Shown here piece after piece: positions 23,598 through 55,817 of a DNA stretch of 64,000 nucleotides. The stretch is from Oikopleura dioica (Eukaryota; Animalia; Chordata). The first letter of the stretch is position 1. The number at the start of each line of letters is the position of its first letter. The DNA lies in the NCBI GenBank assembly GCA_907165135.1, contig OU015568.1, positions 10,230,001 to 10,294,000 of the forward strand, written 5' to 3'. The notes below the pieces were generated by a model, which was given only the letters and a program-made list of their open reading frames with translations, searched no databases and was not told the DNA's origin. A program made the position numbers and the translations under genes.

Positions 23598-26407
23598 ATG
23601 GGTAGTCGGCTGCGGCTGATATGGGATATTTTCATCGCAGCAGCGATTGTTGGAATTACTTCTTATATCATCTACGATGCTATTGCAGATAATGAAGAGA
23701 AAACTACGACAACGGCAATGCCTACAACAACGACTCTTTCAGATAGTGACTATGCAGATTCAATAAAAGTCTGCACAAATCCGCATGAAAAACTGGAGCA
23801 TCCAGAGAAATATCCCGAAAGTCCGCTGGATGAATACGTTTGGAGAGATGGTTAGATTTTTCAAAAATTTCTACTGAATTTATGTTTTAAGACGGAGCGT
23901 TCAATTTTGAGGTCATGTCAAATGAGGTTGTTTCCACCGCGAACGGTGACATGCAGGTCATAAAAGCCAATTTTACATCTCAACTTTGGCTTCCTGATGA
24001 AGACTGGCATCTAGAAGCTACTGGGAATAAGTATTGGATCCACTGGCTTACAATTTTTGTCCCACTTCCTGATCATAAGTATTATGATGAGCGACTTGTC
24101 AACACAGCTGCTTTACTCGTCGAAGGTGGGAGCAATAAAAAGGGAGAAACAGGTCCACCAGACGGCACCACCCTCGGGACATTTCTAGGCAAGCGATTCG
24201 GTAGGTCACTGAAGCAGTACTAAACTATTAAACTTTTCTTCATAGCGTCGTTTTCTGGAGCTGTCAGCATATCTTTGGAGCAAATACCAAATGGGCGTAT
24301 GCGTTTCAAGGACTGGAATAACGGCAATTCTGGTCTGGGTGGGGACGATCTAATTGGGTACACATGGAGACGATTTTTGGAGACAGGCGGAACTGAGCAC
24401 GAGAGGCTTCTTTTGATGCCGATGGCCAAGGCCGCTGTCCTGGCCTTCAACGCCACTTCAGACATTCTCCAACAAGAGCAATGCGGTCGAATTGGATCAA
24501 AACATCCTTGCAGAAAAGCTCCACTCGAAAAGTACATGCCATGGGGCTACTCAAAGCGAGGATGGACGGCGTGGCTCACTGCTGCTGTAGATTACAAGCG
24601 TGTCGCTGCGGTCAATCCTATCGTGTTGAGCTTTCTGAATATGATTCCCAATTTTCATCATTACTGGCGTGCATTCGGCGGCTGGAGCTTCGCCATGGCT
24701 CCATATTATAAGCAAAATATTACGAAAACGTTGGACGACCCGCTTAACATTGAAGCGGCAAAGATTCTCGACCCATACACGTTTAAGGGGGTGGTGGTCG
24801 AGAATTAAGATTTTTTAAACCATGATTGAGAAAAAACCGAAAGGGACAAGAAAATTTATATTTTCTAGGGTTAAAGATCAACGTTGAAAGAATGTGGGCG
24901 CGTGGAGAAAAAAAAAATTTTTTTTTTGAAAAAGCTGATAAAAATTTTATGAAAGTGGACCCTACTTCAATCCAAGATTACGGGCAAAATAACTTTTTTT
25001 TCAAAGATCAAACCTCATATGATGATAGAATAGACCCTTACGGATGTGGGCGCGTGGAGATTATTTAGTGTATCGCTGTAGAAAAAAAGTTCGTAATTGA
25101 ATCGAAAATGCTGGGAGCCTGAAAAATCGTCATTTTCATTCATTTTAAAATGAAATTTTCGAAAACATAACAGTAATCGTATTTTTTTTAGATTTTTATA
25201 ATTAAAATATGATCCAGAAATATAATCTTGCAGGAAAAAATCAATTTTTAAGTGGTTTTAGTGCGAAAAACGCGTTTTAGAATTTCCGAAAATGGCATTT
25301 TCATAGCATAAAATCGTAAATTTTCTTAAATAAAGTTGGTTTAATAAAAAAAAGCTAGAGACCAAAAATACTCCTTTTTTATCAAGGAATCTGAAAATAA
25401 TAATAGAATTTTAAAAAGTCGAAAAAAATTTTCTCGACCACCACCCCCTTAAAGACAGGCTTATCATGCCTAAGCTTGTAATCTCAGCCGCGGGAGACGA
25501 GTTTTTTATGGCTGACGATACCCACTATTGGCTCAAAGATATGAAAGGGCCAACATACTTTCGACTTCTTCCAAACGCGGAACACGCAACTGTCCTTCAC
25601 AGAAGAAATACAAAAGTTATGTATTTTACGATGCGTCAATTCTACCTGTCGTCAATGCTTGATCTGCCGATGCCAGGTGCGTAAACATCAACAAATAGCT
25701 AAAATGTCTTCGCACTATTAGACTACTGCACAACTCGCTACACACGAAATGATGGAAGGCGTGGTTTGCGAATCCAGACAAATGATGTTCTACGAGGCCT
25801 GGATGCGTTTATTGTCGACTCTCGGGATAAAAGTAGATTTAAAATCTTGACTTCGACTCTAGCTAAAATTTAGAACGCCGAGATTACCGTTTCATCCAGG
25901 TCAGAGAGGGAAGTTTCAAACCATTTGAACTTGAGCAAGACTTTCCCGGTTTCGAGGGTGTCTTTGACAATTACGACTATGAAGGTGGCAAGCAAATAAC
26001 CCTGAAGAATACAAGCCACTATCAATTCGACAGAGACATTGCGGACCAAGAAGAATTCCTGGAATACTCCCTTACCATCAAGGTTATATGAGCTTCATTT
26101 TTCAAACTAAAACCAATTAGGCGAATGTATGGCAACACTATACGCCTCACCAGATTGAAAACTCCGACTACGAATACGACTATTTTATCGAAATGGATCC
26201 TGGAGAGCTTGGCTACAGAGCTTTCCTTTTGAATGCTCAGTTTCAGGTATGCACTTTCCTGATGATACCTTGGTTAATTTGTTTGTTTAGGGTTCTTTCG
26301 ATGCTTATGGATGGTGGGAAACGACTTCCGAAGTCCAGTTCGCTGACATCGACCACGATCCCTTCGAAGACTGCGAAGGAATAAATTGCTACGGAACTCT
26401 TGTGTAA
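23598..26407 (+). CDS. PqaA/AprA-family (PhoPQ-activated pathogenicity-related) alpha/beta-hydrolase-like protein with N-terminal membrane anchor
   Basis: SPLDEYV; FTSQLW; GYSKRGWTAWLTAAVD; DPYTFK|DRLIMPKLVISAAGDEFF; PNAEH; C-terminus CEGINCYGTLV*; several spliceosomal introns. Confidence 0.88.
24787..25448. mobile_element. MITE with TTAA target duplication and GG termini (Kolobok-like), inserted in the PqaA-like coding sequence
   Basis: 18-bp TIR GGGGGTGGTGGTCGAGAA; TTAA at 24783-24786 and 25449-25452; empty site reads TTT AAA GAC AGG (FKDR). Confidence 0.9.
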
Positions 26408-37321: not shown

Positions 37322-37753
37322 GCTTCCCCAGGGTCAAGTTCTCTGTGCCCAAATTTTATGAAAATTTATCCAAAATTTGATAAGGAAAAGGGTTGAACTT
37401 TATTTTTAATTTATCCGCTGTGGGGAACTCGAGCGGCTTGCTGCAGGGGTCGGCCAATATTCCCCCCGGCCCGGGCGGATCATCTCCACCAACAAGCTCA
37501 AAAAAATTTTTTTCAGTAAGATTTATATTTATGATGATTATAATTCTACAATTAAAATTTAACGTCCGTATAATTAACTAAAAAGATCGATACCGAATTA
37601 ATCTGCTTAGAATCTACCAAAATAGAGCAGCAATCGATCACTCCATGTCTTCATGAAAGAGTGAATTTAGAACAATCTGTCTGAGAATTTGCCGTAGTCC
37701 TAATGAAAAAGCAGCGCTCGACTGTTATCTTTATTAGTCTTTCTTAGTAGATA

Positions 37754-38535
37754 CAGTCGACTCTGGCAATTACGAGTAGCAGAATTACGAGTATTTTGAC
37801 AAAAACCCGCCAATTTTGAAAACAAGGGATCATCGACCGAAAATAATTTTTTTCGAAAAAATTGAGAATGCTTGATTTTAATCATTAACCCGCTAACAGG
37901 GTGGTCGATTTTGCCTACGCTTTTGCCTGTCTGTGATTGAGTGAAAACATGGATCCGGGCATGCGATTGGCTACTCATTTCCACGCGTGGCCGTGAGACG
38001 GCCACGCGCCTGTTACCGGGTTAAATCTTTGGCTTAAGAGTCTCCGGCTCTTCAGATGGTTTTAAAGCAGCTTCAACAGATTGAAAATTTGCATTATTTT
38101 TTTTATGAAAGTCTGTGAATATTATTTTAATTTTTCGTTGACAAAAAACTTTCCAAAGGGGTACGGTAGTAGCTTAGAGCCTTAGCTCTCTCCTGAAAAA
38201 AATTAAGGGTTTCCCTCAGCTTAAATCCCTGAAAAAGCTTGATCCTATCAACCTGATCTTTAACGGCCTGTATATCATTGAGGAGGTAGAACTAGATTTT
38301 TTGAACAACCGTGATTTTCGGGATCATCATAAGGGAAGCGGTTGTAGTCGAGTGTTAAATTCGAGTTCCAATTAAATTAAGGGTGTAAATAAGATAGTTT
38401 CGGAGAAATACTAGCTCCAAGAAGGCCCATTTTCGCAATTTTCGCAAAATCGAGCCAAATTTTCCAACTCGGAGAATTACGAGTATTTCACGAAATTCCC
38501 GACAAAAAAAGGCTCGTAATTGCCAGAGTCGACTG
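37754..38535. mobile_element. 782-bp Tc1/mariner/pogo-type MITE, copy 1
   Basis: 23-bp TIR CAGTCGACTCTGGCAATTACGAG; TA on both flanks. Confidence 0.92.
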
Positions 38536-39730
38536 TACATTATTCTTTTTAAACAAGTAGGTCAAATAAATGACACTGTTCCAAAATGCCTCGCTAATTA
38601 AATATTGCTTTACGAATTTTTACTGATTATATATTATTAATGGATACCTGCTTGATGATTTCTGTTTAGCCAAAATTCCGGGTCGATCATCGCTGAAAAC
38701 ACTTTTCACCTTCATGATTTATGAAAATGAGAATATTAAAGATATTCTCATTTGTTTCTTTACCTTGCGGAACTAAGGCACGTCATCTGCGTTGCCGATC
38801 GACCAGTTTCTGGTGAAGAGCTTCTGCGATTCTTGCAGCAGTTGATTGGTATTCTAGCAGCGCTAGCAACATCGGTCACTGTGTTTTTAAGGAGCGTTTT
38901 CGCTTGGCTCAGTTGACTTTCCTGAACTATTTTGGCTTATTTATGCACGTTTTATCTTCATTTATTAATAAAAAGTATCTCGTTTCGTAATATACGTAAT
39001 AATTCACGATCATTCTTTCAGAAGCCTTTCCTATCTGCTCTGAACCCTCTTTCTTCGACATTCTCTCTCTCTACTTGCTCGTTTTCTGTTAATTACTTTT
39101 CTGGCAATGCCTATCTCTTTGGTTATTCTGGGTCTCCTTTGCGCTTGGAATGGGTATAAATTGAAATGAGTTTATTGACTTGTGTATTGGAAAGTATTTA
39201 CTCGCCTGCGGCAGTAGCGCGAGTGACTGTGGCCGCGGGGGGAACGCTTTCTACACGAGGGGCGGCTGAATATCCGATGAGACGGGGATAACCTTCGCCC
39301 TCCTCGCACTAAGAATACAACATATCCAAAGAGTCAATCGCCAAAAGTGCTTTTGCTCGATTTTAAGCAACGAAAACACAACCCACAGGCCCGCGCGGCT
39401 TTTCGATAAACGATTAGCGGTTAAGCGAAAATAGAAAATAGCGAAGGACGCTAAAAGTAGTATGCAACACGTGGCCAAAGTATTTTTACAAAATGATCGT
39501 TAAGAATCTATGAATCTGTAATTTAGTCCATGACTTGTCCATTCAGCTGGCGTCGTCATTAAATTAGACGATGAAGGGCTGCATGAATGTATTCTTTTCA
39601 TTTCTTGTCTTTGAAAAGGATTTTCCAAATTTCAAAATAAGACCATTTTGTTTCAACAAACTGTATCCCTAAAAAGAATCGTCTCTATCCCAAGTCATCA
39701 AAACCTAGCCTCGGTAGAGCTGATTACGTA

Positions 39731-40512
39731 CAGTCGACTCTGGCAATTACGAGCCTTTTTTTGTCGGGAATTTCGTGAAATACTCGTAATTCTCCGAGTT
39801 GGAAAATTTGGCTCGATTTTGCGAAAATTGCGAAAATGGGCCTTCTTGGAGCTAGTATTTCTCCGAAACTATCTTATTTACACCCTTAATTTAATTGGAA
39901 CTCGAATTTAACACTCGACTACAACCGCTTCCCTTATGATGATCCCGAAAATCACGGTTGTTCAAAAAATCTAGTTCTACCTCCTCAATGATATACAGGC
40001 CGTTAAAGATCAGGTTGATAGGATCAAGCTTTTTCAGGGATTTAAGCTGAGGGAAACCCTTAATTTTTTTCAGGAGAGAGCTAAGGCTCTAAGCTACTAC
40101 CGTACCCCTTTGGAAAGTTTTTTGTCAACGAAAAATTAAAATAATATTCACAGACTTTCATAAAAAAAATAATGCAAATTTTCAATCTGTTGAAGCTGCT
40201 TTAAAACCATCTGAAGAGCCGGAGACTCTTAAGCCAAAGATTTAACCCGGTAACAGGCGCGTGGCCGTCTCACGGCCACGCGTGGAAATGAGTAGCCAAT
40301 CGCATGCCCGGATCCATGTTTTCACTCAATCACAGACAGGCAAAAGCGTAGGCAAAATCGACCACCCTGTTAGCGGGTTAATGATTAAAATCAAGCATTC
40401 TCAATTTTTTCGAAAAAAATTATTTTCGGTCGATGATCCCTTGTTTTCAAAATTGGCGGGTTTTTGTCAAAATACTCGTAATTCTGCTACTCGTAATTGC
40501 CAGAGTCGACTG
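39731..40512. mobile_element. 782-bp Tc1/mariner/pogo-type MITE, copy 2, inverted relative to copy 1
   Basis: Same TIR and TA flanks; internal sequence is the reverse complement of copy 1, and the ORF track gives the same peptides over the element-internal portion on opposite strands. Confidence 0.92.
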
Positions 40513-41994
40513 TATTATACATATCGTCGGTATATTATCGAGCTTTGAACGACTTAGAAACGATCATGTACCAGCTGATAGCAGATAAAAATATAAATGT
40601 ATCTTTAAGCTTTCAGAGCTCTCATAATTTCGATGAGCTACTGTTCTATAATTTTCATTAGAGTCACCTTTGGAGAGACGACCTAGTTAATTGCTTTGCG
40701 TAAATTAAGTTGCCCTCCAAGTATTTATATTAAATCTTAATTAGAGCGTCTCTACGTCTTGAAACGTCTGCTGAGGAAATCATCCGGCAGATTCATTCGA
40801 CACCTGATGGCCGAATGCCGAAGTGCGTTTATCTAACTTAGCTGCAGATCTGCTGGATACCCCGGAAGTATAAAAGATTCATAAGAGACTTGTGTTCACT
40901 AGTCGTCGTCACGTGATTGTTTTCCTTTGCGCGAATTTTCTTGCTGTATTTAAATAAAGACACATATTCATTTTCATTTTAAAATGCTTCTTAGATCTTG
41001 TTTTGTTATGATCCGTGAGGGATGAAATTAATTATGGTTAGTGTGACGGTATTTAGAGACATGGAAGATATTCAATTAAAATTGAGTTAACCTGCAAAGT
41101 TCATTTTCAGGCTTGCGTTTCAAATAATATTAAACTTGAATGGGAATTAAGATCAGTTAATATTGAACGAAGAATACAGTACTTCAGTCTGAATAATGAA
41201 GGACATTTGGGCTCTGAAGTTGGATAACGAATTTGCTGTGAAGCCACTTGCAACTTCTAATCTCGAAGCCTTGTTTGCCGACTTTTTTCTTTTTATTTTC
41301 ATAAAAATGATGGAATATCGTATAATATTTTCCATAAAAATCAAGTAATAGTATCTACCTTCGAATTCGTTTTTGATACAAAAAAGTACAAGAAAGTTCA
41401 TTTCTAAGATCTTTAGGATGCGGTGTAAGATTTCAAAAAGATCCTCACGAATACACCTTAATTTTTGTCGTTCGTTCCTTCGCCAGACAAGGCCAAGCAA
41501 CAGGTTTATCGACCATCGCATCCGCTAATTTCATGATTATCATGACAGCTCAACAGCGCCTCGTCGCGTCGGACACCCGTCAGCATCAATCGGTCATCGC
41601 ATATTAAATTTTCTGCAGCGAGAAGAAAAACTATGAAAAATTTGTATTGAAAACAGCAATATCAAAAATTTTCAGCCCCTATATCGTAGAAGTAATTTTT
41701 CTTTTCGAGTGAAAAAGTAGAGATAAGTAGAAAAAACAAGGAAGACAACGAAGATACATGCTTTTGTTTACAAAAGTCCTCTTATTGCTGGGGACAGTCA
41801 AATGTAAGTAAAGGGAGTGTGGGAAGGAAAGATAATGATTTTCTTCAGGCGATTTACTAGGTAAAATAGGTATAATAACTAAGGTACGTGTAGTGAACTG
41901 CGGTAATAGATCATTTTTATAATTTTTCTTTCGTCTATTTGAAATTATGCAAATCAACTTCACGCCACATTTTAGGTCAGACCAAAAACTTGGC

Positions 41995-50527: not shown

Positions 50528-53500
50528 ATGAGCTTGAATACAAACACTAAAAATATTCAAATATTTTTATTTGTGATATTCTTGTGTATTTATTTTGTTG
50601 TAACTGGCTTAAGACAAGAAAAGCTTTATTTTAACTCGGAGAAATATCAAGCTCAAGATGAGACCACAAAAAATGATCATTTGATGTTTTTTATCAACCA
50701 CGGAACTTATCTTCCTCCAAGCAAGGATATAAGGCCCTATGAGATTATTCATTCGCCAAGAGAAAATTACGAGGATGTGGAAATTGTTTTTGGTCTAAAA
50801 ACTGTTTTTAAGGAAGCGATAGTAGAAAAAGCTCGTAACACACAGAGTTGCAAATTTGCTCAGCGGTCGCTCAGCTCAGCTCAGTAGTTTAAGAAAATGA
50901 TCTGATCTTCTCAGTTCAGCTCAGATCAGACAAGTATCACTCAGCTCAGCTCCACTCAATGGTTTTATCAGAATTTTACTACTAAAAATACAGTAAAAAC
51001 AGCTTAGCTGAGTTCACCCAGCTCAGATAAGCTCTTATTAGGGTCTGCTCAGCTCAGCTCAATGACCTCTGAAAAAGGCTAGCTTAGCTCAGAGAATTTT
51101 TCACTCAGATCAGCTCGGCTCAGCCAAGCGAAATGAAGGCAAAATTTGCATCACTGGTAACACAAGAAAATCATTATGTTTCTTCCCAAAGAACTTTTTA
51201 ACTATCACCCACATAAGCATCGAATGAAGAGAGATTCGATAAGAAAATCATTTGGTAATTCCGATTTCTATCGCGAAAAATATAACGTAAAATTCGTGTT
51301 CTTGCTCGGAAAAAGGAGGATGCCCATGAACAGAGTTGCAAACTGCTAGAAATATAATTATCAGATCTTGGCTGTGTATCGCGCTGATCTCTTTGTTAAT
51401 TTTATTAAATAAAATAACTCTTTCGAGGAAAGTGAAATTCTCGCGGAAGAAGAATTGTTCGATGATATCATCTACGGGAGCTTTCAAGACTCGTACTGGA
51501 ATTTAACCTTCAAGGAGAGCATGTTTTACTCTTGGACAAAACAAAACGTGCCCAATGTGAAATTCATTTACCGAGGAGACGATGACAATTTTCTTAATCC
51601 ACTTGGAGTGATGAAATTTCTCGAAAAACATTGGGACGAAGCAAATGCAGAAGCTGCACTTTGGGGTGGAGTTATTCAGGGAATGCCCTCCGTTATTAGC
51701 GACACGACGAAATTAGATGAAATCATGGAGGAAAGAAGGACTGATGTGTAAGTCGCGAAAAAATAAAGCTCAGTTTTGTTTATTCTGTTTTAGATGGCCA
51801 GAAGAAGTATATCCGAAGTATGCATCTGGTTCTGGTCATATTATGAACCGAAATGCTCTCTTCGTTTTGGAAGGACAAATGCAGCTCAATCCGTTGATAT
51901 CTATTGATGATGCTTTTATTGGCATTTGTATGACGAAAGGGTCAAAGGGTTCAAATTTTAGCATTATTAAAAATTCCAAAGTTATCGGAGTGCTTTCTTA
52001 TGACCCCCTTTTAAGCTGGGTTAGAAGATAGAATTTTCGATGTCAATGAATTTCACCCGTGGGGAATCAAGTTTGAAAACGGAAATGATTTTTGCACTAT
52101 TGTTAATGCAATCTCCATTCATTACCCAAAATTTGATTACGAATGCATGCTTTCGAAGATCCTCAAATACGCGGAAAAATGCGAAAAGATGAACTTCACG
52201 AGGCCAGAGATATTTCTTTCAGTTGTCCCTGGTACGAAAGCAAGCTTTCGGCGCCGATTCTTGATGGGCCTTTTTACCAACGCTGCGGGCCTGAGTTCAA
52301 TAACAGTAGATGCAGCACTGACAGGCTCTTGGCTCGACATTCTAGACGGTTTTTGTGGTGAGAACCAATTTTCGCCTCGAGAAATTTGAAACCATTCTTA
52401 TTCATATACAGTCGTTACGCACAATTCCGTAACGCACAATTCCGGACATTTAGGGAAAACGGAAAAATTAAAAACGCACAATTCCGGACAATTCGACAAA
52501 AATTTTAACTGAAATCTTTATTTTACTCGATCATTTTTTTGCAAAAAAACTAAGAATGCTTGCTTGTTTCTTCGGCTTTTCTGGCTTCTGTTGAGGTGCA
52601 ATTTCCATGGCTTCTTCTGGTTGTTCGTCAACATGCTCGCGATCATCTCCAAGATCAAGTTGCGCGAAATCCCGGGCCATAAGCAGCTCTTCTTCCACTT
52701 TTTTGATCTGTTGGCGCTGGAGCTCTTCATCTTCATTCTCGATAGGCGCTTCCGAAATTTATAAGTTTGTAAAGAAAGATATTAAGTTTAAATTATACCT
52801 GATACTTTTGGAATCGAGGAATGCCGGATTTTCGCCAACATGTCCGTATAATGTTGGGAGACATTTCGGAGACGAGCCTGACTGCAGTTTTGACTCCCAA
52901 CTCCAGTCCAGGCGAAGTTTTTTGGTGCTCTTGTCGGAAAGACCGCAGCCATTTTCGGTACTTTCCTTTTATTAGGAGATCGTCAAAATTATATATTTTT
53001 ACATAGTTTTAAATTAATTTATCTTTTAATAATTTTTAACGAAGTATTGACAAACCCCCGCCTTTAAGACAGGCGAAAAATACCTGATCGAGTGGCTGAT
53101 ATGCCCCAGTTGTCCCTGGCTTGAAAAAACCCAGGGCAACGTTCGTAACTCCAAGCGCAGAAGGGTCAACATTCAGATGACCCGAGAAATTGTCAAGGAG
53201 GAGCAAGTTCTTTTGACCCGGTTTTACCCGGGCCAAGAACCGAGAGAATCTCTTAAGGGATCCCCTCCCGATTTGAAAAATATCATCGAGAGCTTTTATG
53301 TGATATATTTTTGGAATCTCCGTTGTCTGGCGATCATTTTCATATATTACGTCAAAGGGAGTCCGTCACGTGGTAAGCCGTGACACAGCTTTGAAAATGG
53401 CTTATTTTAACGAAAAATTTTACTTAGAAAAAATTCGCAATTTTTTCGACTTTTCAAAGTCGACATAATCAGATGAATAAGGGCTCTTAAGAAAGCTCAG

Positions 53501-55817
53501 AGAAAACTGAATTAGAAAAAAATAGATTAAATAAAATATCTAACCACTAAAAGGTGCTAGAGAGCTAAGAAAGTCAAAAAAATGGCAAAAATCAGTTAAA
53601 AAACATTTTGTAAAGAAAAATTCTACAATCCTTGACGGAATCACATGCCTGTACTAGAGATTGTAGATTAGGGGTCAAGGAAGACAGTTGTTATTGATTT
53701 AGGGCTCTATCTAAGAGCAGAAAAACTAAGTTCGATTTTGAAAATGGCCCAAAGTAGGGTTTTTCGCGAGTATCAATGTTTTCAGCCCGTCTTTTCAAGG
53801 TGTTTCCCCTTATGAAAATTAATTTCTGTACTAGAGTTTGTTCATTAAAAAAGGGGCTTCAAAATGAGCCCTCATACTTGTAAAAAGCTCAGTCCTAAAA
53901 AAAGTAGTTCGAAGTCAAAGTTGACGAAATCGGGGGATCCCTTAAGCTCCTCCTTGAAAATTTCCCGGGTCATCCACCCGTTCTGGTTAGAGTACGCAAC
54001 GAAGCACGGAAATTTTTTCGCCAGCATCGTTGTGCCATTTGACACAAAAGTACGGGAGCTTTCCAGCCCAGACCAAGTGGTCATTTTATTTGCTAAAAAA
54101 ATTTACAAAATTTCATATTCCGGACCAAGGTCTTATGGCCCAGAAAATTTCCGGACCAAGTTATCTTATGGCCCAGAAATTTCCGGACCAAGTTTTTTTT
54201 GGCCCAGAATTTCTTTCTGATATTTTTCAGTAAATGATTGATAAATGATGTGTTTTTCTTTTGGTAAAATTAATTAAATAAAAGAAGAAGGTAAATGTTA
54301 TATTTTTGAGTACCTTTGACGATGACCCCTGGTAGAAAGGATCCATCGCCGTCAGCGGAAATGATCGGAGTAAGGGTGAAGCGGAGGCGCTCATCTTTCG
54401 CTTTTGATTTTCGAAAACATTCATTCTTGCGAATGATCAGACGTTTTTCTGGAGCATACGCAATGAACATGGCGGATTCGTCGAGGTTCCAAATGTTCCC
54501 ATCATCATAACCACTGCACATTGCCATTAGCCGAGCCAGTTCCATTTTCATCTCTACGTCAGAAAGAATGACCTTCGTACTAACTGACCGTGTAATTTTC
54601 AAATTATACGACTTGATGATTCGGTTGCAGTAGTCTGGATGGAAAGACATTGACGTAATTTCTTCCTTGTCTTTATATTTCTCCGTAGCTGCAAGTTTAT
54701 GAGCTTCATCCTGCAGGCCAACAACGCCCTCAATGTCCACAGTCGAAGATTCAATTATCGCCAGAAGATCATCGTCAAACTCTTTTCGAATGTCACTCTG
54801 CTTGTAGTCTGGTCGGCAACGGTTCGCAACCTTTCCAGCAGCCAGAATCTCGTCTGCTTTATTTCTCCAATCGTAGAATGTTGCTCTAGGCAGCTTTTTA
54901 TGTTCTTTCTTCTCGAAATATTTGTTGACTTCTTTGTATCCGGCGCCAGCTTTGATTAATCGACAGTAAAACTGCCTTTGTTTGAATTCTACATCGACAC
55001 GGGTAGATCCTGGCCGTTTTCTCTGCTTTTTTCTCGACATTTTACGTTTTGAATAAAAAACAAGCATTTTGAAAACAAAAATTTTTTCCATCTAGAATCC
55101 GCACAATTACGGACATTTTGCCCTTTTTGCTGAAAAAAAAGTGTCCGGAATTGTGCGTAACGACTGTATAGTAAAGTGTAATTCACACTTATTACGATTT
55201 CAAAGCCAAATACAGACATGACTGGACTGTTCGAAAACCCGAAAATGGTCCATGTTGTAGCCCAAATGGCTACTGTGTGCCAACCAAATGGGATTGCACA
55301 TGTCCAGATTGTGTGGATTTTCTTGAACTGAAAGCTCGTAAGTTATGAAAAAATCTGATTTTGTTCCTTTCATTTTTTTCATTTGAAGATAAAGACGAAG
55401 CTGTCGAGCACAAAAAAGGTGAAACCTGCTGTCCGTTGGTCAAAATACACACAAAATTATTTTTCAGGATCAGAGTTCTTAGTTGACAGAAAAAAGGTGC
55501 TAAACTTAAGGCTCCTGATTGAAAAATGCATGATCAAAACTCTTTAAAGAGGTATCTACAGAAAAATCATTATCAATGAGGAACAAGCTGAATACGTCTC
55601 TAAAGAGCTTTCGAATGAAAAGCCAATTTACAAGCTCGTTTATGGCGAATTCAACTCTGAGGAAATGGGATGGCACATTCAAATGCTTCAAAATGACAGC
55701 TACATTCCGATTAATGCTTACGATAAAATAACTACAGCGAATAAATGCCCACGAAAGCTTGCCGGATTATATGGACTTGACGTTTTTGTTGACTGTTTTC
55801 ATGAAAAATACAATTAA
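50528..55817 (+). CDS. GT31-family beta-1,3-glycosyltransferase (type II membrane), probably with a C-terminal Cys-rich region beyond the pogo insertion
   Basis: TM IFLFVIFLCIYFVV; DSIRKSFG; KFVFLLG; DDIIYGSFQDSYWNLTFK; YRGDDDNF; YPKYASGSG; IDDAFIG. Exons after 55176 (PCCSPNGYC...CTCPDCVDF) join in frame by eye. The extension is less certain than the core (50528-52360). Confidence 0.7.
50843..51156. mobile_element. 314-bp hAT-type MITE with internal (GCTCA)n repeats, probably intronic in the GT31 gene
   Basis: Imperfect TIR CAGAGTTGCAAATTTGC / CAGTGATGCAAATTTTGC; exact 8-bp TSD GTAACACA (50835-50842, 51157-51164). Confidence 0.88.
52409..55166 (-). mobile_element. pogo/Tigger-like DNA transposon (2758 bp) with an intron-containing transposase
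   Basis: 21-bp TIR CAGTCGTTACGCACAATTCCG; TA TSD; HTH (LPRATFYDW); IWNLDES; WMTREIF; LLLLDNFSGH; YQPLDQ; CWRKSGI; C-terminal PIP-box-like KQASILSFF. Confidence 0.93.
53257..53941. mobile_element. MITE with TTAA target duplication and GG termini, nested in the pogo transposase exon
   Basis: TIR GGGATCCCC(TC)CCGATTT (TC present in the left copy only); TTAA at 53253-53256 and 53942-53945; empty site on the minus strand reads GAG CTT AAG AGA TTC (ELKRF). Confidence 0.88.

Follow-up and report, generated by a model that had tools for sequence, protein, structure and literature searches.

Kolobok DNA transposons are defined by a 4-bp TTAA target-site duplication together with 5'-RR..YY-3' ends, a combination that sets them apart from piggyBac (PMC9587614, PMC6004289). 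Transposon insertion has been listed as a source of introns in Oikopleura (PMC3443670), and in a sister larvacean, Fritillaria borealis, non-canonical introns derived from MITEs (miniature inverted-repeat transposable elements) undergo splicing, according to Henriet 2019 as related in PMC11282704. In Oikopleura dioica itself, 11–12% of introns are other than GT-AG, the median intron length is 49 nt (PMC8008620), and at GA-AG donors there is a conserved AG upstream and an A at +3 (PMC7072748). We have analysed a 64,000-nt stretch of O. dioica DNA (assembly GCA_907165135.1, contig OU015568.1, positions 10,230,001 to 10,294,000 of the forward strand; "the window", whose own numbering is used below), in which a TTAA-flanked element at 53257–53941 interrupts the second exon of a pogo-like transposase gene that is read on the minus strand. 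A preliminary description of this locus had regarded the insert as a precise GG-AG intron inside a transposase, had seen the same geometry in an unrelated element at 24787, and had drawn from the two a general rule for G-ended elements. As we describe below, the anatomy of the insert, its location in a transposase exon and the restoration of the reading frame were borne out, and the common geometry and the general rule were not.

The insert, its empty site and its host gene

We consider the insert to be, most probably, a young MITE of the Kolobok type that is nested in a pogo-type transposon. The parts of the element are as follows.

53257–53941, no strand assigned: probable Kolobok-type MITE, a non-autonomous DNA transposon of 685 bp, non-coding, with terminal inverted repeats (TIRs) and a target-site duplication; absent from the paralog
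53253–53256, no strand assigned: TTAA target-site duplication, gene-downstream side
53942–53945, no strand assigned: TTAA target-site duplication, gene-upstream side
53257–53265, plus strand: TIR core GGGATCCCC, with its mate at 53933–53941 on the opposite strand; the ends read 5'-GG..CC-3'

The target before insertion was the palindrome CTTAAG, with a single TTAA, and on the minus strand the junctions of the 685-bp element read ...GAGGAGCTTAAG|GGATCCCCCG...GGGGATCCCTTAAG|AGATTCTCT... An inverted-repeat scan of the window returned CTTAAGGGATCCCC as a perfect 14-nt inverted repeat (53252–53265 with 53933–53946), and this pattern had no further mismatch-free occurrence in the window. The two ends of the element have 9 nt in common (GGGATCCCC), followed by a 2-nt indel and then by CGATTT. 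With TTAA on both flanks, where the paralog's empty site has just one TTAA, and with termini GGGATCCCC...GGGGATCCC that conform to 5'-RR and YY-3', the element carries both of the features by which Kolobok is recognised. Elements of the piggyBac type end in 5'-CCC..GGG-3'; the ends observed here are GGG..CCC, and a piggyBac assignment was rejected. Because TTAA in combination with GG..CC is the Kolobok signature, the terminal G residues are best seen as a trait of the superfamily and not as an adaptation to splicing, and the perfection of the duplications and of the TIR cores indicates that the insertion is young.

No open reading frame (ORF) of note was present for the 685-bp element in the ORF list of the window, and no second copy was found in the window or in the paralog locus. 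An autonomous Kolobok partner with matching ends was not identified, and none is present in the window. A metagenome scan with the MITE end gave 3 matches, which we attribute to chance because all of them lie on contigs of 57% G+C that have no similarity beyond the MITE end itself. The same perfect duplications and TIR cores that point to a young insertion would also suit an allele that segregates or is specific to the assembly, carried by a single haplotype or individual, with the typical genome empty at this site. We regard that as possible, if rather doubtful, and it is compatible with a nested Kolobok-type insertion and not opposed to it.

The empty site that the preliminary description had proposed to seek in other copies of the host was indeed observed. 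A paralog in O. dioica OKI2018_I69 (L001, on OU015569.1) is 92% identical in DNA sequence to window positions 55175–52485 and carries the site as CTTAAGAG, uninterrupted within ...GAGCTTAAGAGATTC... (...GGAGGAGCTTAAGAGATTCTCT...); the insertion is, for this reason, the derived state. Removal of 53252–53940 from the window copy restores the frame without a trace, and the flanks translate as ...GWMTREIFKEELK and RFSRFLARVKPGQKNLLLLDNFSGH..., as had been stated earlier. The paralog gene is annotated as g16924, and its protein is Oidioi.mRNA.OKI2018_I69.XSR.g16924 (P0001 below).

The assignment of the host to the pogo family, also made in the preliminary description, is upheld by a DDE_1 domain, 21-nt TIRs and TA duplications. 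The following features were located in the host.

52409–55166, minus strand: full-length pogo-like transposon (Tc1/mariner superfamily), 2069 bp once the insertion is subtracted, flanked on either side by a TA duplication
55146–55166, minus strand: 5' TIR CAGTCGTTACGCACAATTCCG, 21 nt, with a perfect mate at 52409–52429
54314–55040, minus strand: exon 1, putative helix-turn-helix (HTH)/CENP-B-type N-terminus and first catalytic D (NLDES); its end matches P0001
54093–54313, minus strand: intron 1, GT-AG, with 2.9 copies of a 31-nt tandem repeat
53941–54092, minus strand: exon 2, portion upstream of the insertion, ...GWMTREIFKEELK
53062–53251, minus strand: exon 2, portion downstream of the insertion, RFSRFLARVKPGQKNLLLLDNFSGH...QPLDQVFFACLKG, with the second and third catalytic D
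52966–53061, minus strand: intron 2, apparently non-canonical GC-AG (AAAG|GCGGGGG...AAAAG|GA), the only fit to the protein alignment
52753–52798, minus strand: intron 3, donor GT, acceptor CG at 52754–52753, where the paralog has AG
52531–52752, minus strand: exon 4, PIP-box-like tail QASILSFF and stop codon

The TIRs at 52409–52429 and 55146–55166 are perfect over 21 nt and have TA on both sides, and TA is found at the 5' end of L001 as well. In sum, the four exons amount to 1455 nt, or 485 codons, a count that is anchored on P0001 and on the family alignment. Each exon was searched separately, or the exon of the paralog, which is naturally uninterrupted, served as the query. We observed a DDE_1 match at E 2.3e-5 for the downstream piece of exon 2 and at E 1.3e-12 for the paralog exon, the latter match spanning the insertion point, which confirms that the element sits inside a transposase exon; within the domain, the insertion point lies between the first and second catalytic aspartates. 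An exhaustive protein search with the paralog exon as query gave 313 relatives at E<=1e-3. Exon 1 had no Pfam match, and in the Atlas language-model feature search it adjoined clusters that combine HTH_Tnp_Tc5/CENP-B with DDE_1, at a score of 0.95; the exon-2 protein had no match among PDB sequences.

All 481 of the 481 aligned codons are open in both the host copy and the paralog, and the ratio of nonsynonymous to synonymous substitution (dN/dS) is 0.18, at a synonymous divergence (dS) of 0.21; from these values the host copy appears to have been coding until recently. Two defects were observed in it, the MITE insertion and a change from AG to CG at the acceptor of the last intron. When the transposase is read through, a stop is met 24 codons into the insert, so that the host copy most likely makes no active enzyme now. 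Intron 2 is read as GC-AG since no other reading agrees with the conserved DQ-VFFACLKG-KYRK spacing. TTAAAGG precedes it, and an origin as an old Kolobok insertion was considered for it and rejected: it lacks both a TIR and a second TTAA, and the reading frame is incompatible. The acceptor of intron 2 differs by 1 nt in L001, where either a CG-AG reading or a frameshift would follow.

Word searches with exon 1, the read-through ORF and P0001 as queries returned P0001 as the sole protein relative, one of these searches having used a length window that would miss a full-length model of 485 aa. No transcript-derived product of the host gene was found in protein collections by these word searches, the 485-aa model being outside the length window, and exact look-ups of the exon-1 ORF in protein collections gave no match. 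The public annotation was built with RNA-sequencing hints. In its model of L001 (6001–7351), a GT donor (CGG|GTAAAA) located in the apical loop of a structured region is joined to the last exon. The P0001 product accordingly consists of the N-terminal DNA-binding part followed by the PIP-like tail and lacks catalytic residues two and three; this short model may represent a repressor-like isoform, or it may be an artefact of annotation. As a separate observation, the tandem repeat of intron 1 (window 54118–54209) includes GGTCCGGAAAT, which resembles the TIR-proximal motif GTCCGGAATTGTGCG that is repeated near both ends of the host; in the paralog, the intron 1 repeat region is strongly structured, with a z of about -9.

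Removal geometry and the case for splicing

The intron proposed in the preliminary description corresponds to the following segment.

53252–53940, minus strand: candidate GG-AG intron, 689 nt, AAG|GGATCC...CCCTTAAG|AG, one of seven equivalent exact removals

Exact removal at these ends would join ...GAGCTTAAG to AGATTCTCT... The empty site is, in fact, rebuilt by seven equivalent deletions of 689 nt, the ends of which are CT-CC, TT-CC, TA-CT, AA-TT, AG-TA, GG-AA and GG-AG, and the removal of 53252–53940 is the one among the seven that has GG-AG ends. Restoration of the frame is no evidence of splicing, because deletion of an element together with one copy of its duplication always undoes a target-duplicating insertion. 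The deletion window can slide by one base to GG...AG, given that G is the first base of the element and that a G follows TTAA at this site, as it does at 14.5% of the window's 337 TTAA sites. By geometry alone, AAG|GGATCC...TTAAG|AG also presents the pattern of a G*-AG intron, that is, G at +1, a 3' AG, an upstream AG and A at +3. An intron with zero footprint and GG-AG ends is, on these grounds, a geometric possibility offered by the sequence.

We think it probable that the insert is a nested Kolobok-type MITE in a pogo host and that the GG-AG intron is a by-product of this geometry. A young non-autonomous Kolobok-type element would have inserted, by cut-and-paste, at the only CTTAAG of the host, and the "precise GG-AG intron" would be the empty site viewed from the other side. 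The insertion would have been neutral since the host is itself a transposon copy, for which reason no selection is needed to account for its persistence, and the insert is presumably not spliced with any efficiency. A neutral and inactivating nested insertion would in this way explain everything observed at the locus.

Several observations weigh against this interpretation. The host has TTAAG at 1 of its 13 TTAA sites, and it is this one that was hit, a hint at best. Non-canonical splicing is permitted by the 11–12% of non-GT introns in O. dioica (PMC8008620), AAG|GGA fits the GA-AG donor pattern of the species (PMC7072748), and the host gene itself apparently needs a GC-AG intron. Also, the 481 open codons and the dN/dS of 0.18 suggest a copy that was coding until recently. 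It could be proposed, in line with the preliminary description, that the MITE is spliced exactly at AAG|GG...AG|AG by a permissive U2 spliceosome, to yield an mRNA identical to that of the empty copy and a transposase that is still coding. The GG-AG geometry with its zero footprint would agree with this, as would the donor context AG|GxA reported for GA-AG introns (PMC7072748), the frequency of non-canonical introns (PMC8008620), the listing of transposons as an intron source in Oikopleura (PMC3443670), the spliced MITE-derived introns of F. borealis (Henriet 2019, as described in PMC11282704), and the otherwise intact exons of the host.

We nevertheless judge exact splicing to be unlikely. 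Its geometry is to be expected by chance in about 1 of 7 TTAA insertions. At 689 nt, against a median of 49 nt, the candidate intron is 14 times as long as the typical one. The donor is poor at +4 to +6, which read TCC, and the acceptor is poor in having a purine-rich tract upstream and A at -3. Both candidate splice sites fall inside a long predicted duplex in which a host helix, described in the next section, is stacked on the MITE TIR stem; neither typical intron size nor accessible sites, which are not strict requirements, were found for the candidate. A transposon host needs no rescue, moreover, and the acceptor of the last intron is already mutated in this copy. It might still be imagined that the helix stacked on the MITE stem clamps the ends of the insert, so that exact GG-AG removal follows and the pogo transposase stays functional. 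We find this very unlikely; if true, one transposon would be accommodating a second one through splicing, in a chordate whose spliceosome is permissive.

Removal need not be exact. Inserts of Tc1 in Caenorhabditis elegans are removed imprecisely through cryptic sites. Under a GN-AG rule, 27 frame-preserving removals are available within about 60 nt of the ends of the element, among them one canonical GT-AG of 674 nt (53925 to 53252), and small in-frame variants could arise from the GT at 53925 with the same acceptor, which would add the 5 residues GSPDF, or from neighbouring GN-AG pairs. The GT at 53925 stands in a weak context (TTC|GTCAAC), however, and any change of this kind falls between catalytic residues; such imprecise removal is hardly to be expected.

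The window contains only two elements with TTAA and TIRs, at 53257–53941 and 24787–25448. The second has ends GGGGG..CCCCC, which also fit the Kolobok signature, and the preliminary description was correct in treating the two as unrelated: we detected no similarity between them beyond TTAA and G-rich ends. It had also assigned them the same geometry, and this did not hold. None of the exact-restoring removals of the 24787 element is GG-AG, so that the two have no common geometry; its GG-AG option (24789–25454) leaves AAG in place of AAA, a synonymous swap. Two elements are in any case too few to support a general rule for G-ended insertions.

A third TTAA element had been considered at the TTAAGGGTTTCCC pair 38203/40051 and was rejected, the pair being located inside a perfect inverted repeat of 793 nt that extends past TTAA. 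This repeat (37751–38543 with 39723–40515, 100% perfect, spacer 1179 nt) is located just downstream of a UGM-like gene and could represent either a foldback element or a product of the assembly.

In summary, the host copy is a poor test case for splicing: it is a transposon, on which host selection does not act, and once spliced its RNA would not differ from that of the empty copy. What it contributes is a further catalogued insertion toward a genome-wide test. Should Kolobok MITEs truly be spliced from O. dioica exons as G*-AG introns, the Fritillaria story, of a spliceosome relaxed to neutralise transposon hits, would reach the main larvacean model, and it would help to account for the 11–12% of introns in O. 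dioica that are non-canonical and for how fast its introns turn over.

The helix in the transposase coding sequence

Conserved, covarying base pairing in the coding sequence that surrounds the insertion is a more unusual finding than the reading of the MITE as an intron. The two arms of the helix are as follows.

53946–53974, minus strand: helix arm 1, codons of WMTREIFKEE
53176–53204, minus strand: helix arm 2, codons of LLLDNFSGH; complementarity with arm 1 at 27 of 29 positions

In the uninterrupted paralog, a stretch of 123 nt that contains the helix is predicted to fold at -74.9 kcal/mol, with z -11.9 relative to shuffled sequences and z -8.8 relative to 2000 synonymous recodings, and is the sole such folding outlier in the paralog coding sequence. 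The host copy and the paralog differ at 2 of 117 positions in the helix region, as compared with 164 of 1867 elsewhere. In the predicted fold, the TTAA that was hit by the MITE is the unpaired linker of a three-way junction, and in the fold that includes the insert, the host helix is stacked on the terminal stem of the MITE.

We examined the helix in seven family members; the relatives from the exhaustive search came from two more loci of O. dioica, from marine metagenomes and from one Logan run (the window, 53946–53974 with 53176–53204; L001, 6597–6706; L005, L007, L008, L009 and L010). It is kept in six of the seven, where 126 nt fold at -56 to -76 kcal/mol with z of -6 to -9 relative to recoding. 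In a gap-free alignment, 86.7% of cells pair, and 4 of the 29 pairs change on both sides; for example, AAG, CAG or GAG in arm 1 is paired with the Leu codons CTT, CTG or CTC in arm 2. The covariation score was 0.209, compared with 0.097 +/- 0.016 in shuffles (0 of 500 reached the observed value) and 0.056–0.146 with slid partners, seven sequences being few for a score of this kind. Folding of the sense strand was the stabler in 4 of 6 members, a result that does not separate RNA from DNA, nor one strand from the other. Both the window copy and L001 have the apical-loop GT that serves as donor in the public paralog model, and it is not conserved in the other members.

No Rfam family was found over 52300–55300, and our literature search found no precedent for a helix inside the coding sequence of a transposase catalytic domain. 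The helix may therefore matter more than the MITE, in that a conserved, covarying RNA or DNA structure in the catalytic domain of a eukaryotic transposase would be a new kind of transposon-encoded element. A different arrangement was seen in the same domain in a relative represented on marine metagenome contigs (L012, 340–600; L013; L014; one of them from TARA): an intervening sequence of ~120 nt, with inverted ends of its own, sits between the LL and DNFSAH codons and is a MITE-like candidate intron.

Comparison with known systems

The closest counterparts of the insert are the non-autonomous elements of the Kolobok superfamily, such as the T2-MITEs of Xenopus, which likewise have a 4-bp TTAA duplication, 5'-RR..YY-3' ends, short TIRs, no ORF and a length of a few hundred bp (PMC9587614, PMC6004289). 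They differ from it in the terminal motif, which is GGGATCCCC here and not AGGRR. The MITE introns of F. borealis (Henriet et al. 2019, as related in PMC11282704) also belong to a larvacean, and they too consist of an element with TIRs and a duplication in coding sequence, with non-GT ends supplied in part by the target site. The Fritillaria introns are mostly AG-AC or AG-AT, are proven by RNA and occur in many copies, whereas the candidate here would have GG-AG ends, is a single copy read from the genome, and has a transposon as its host. With introners (Micromonas, Aureococcus and others; Huff 2016, Gozashti 2022) the insert has in common that the end of a DNA transposon and its duplication could supply splice sites. 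Introners are present as hundreds of spliced copies with canonical sites, in contrast to the one genomic copy seen here, and the main text of Gozashti 2022 makes no mention of Oikopleura or tunicates. The host, finally, resembles the pogo/Tigger group of Tc1-mariner elements in its DDE_1 domain with NLDES, LLLDNFSGH and QPLD, its TA duplication, its TIRs, a putative HTH N-terminus and its PIP-like C-terminus. It differs from that group in having three introns, one of them apparently GC-AG, and in the 29-bp helix within the coding sequence of its catalytic domain.

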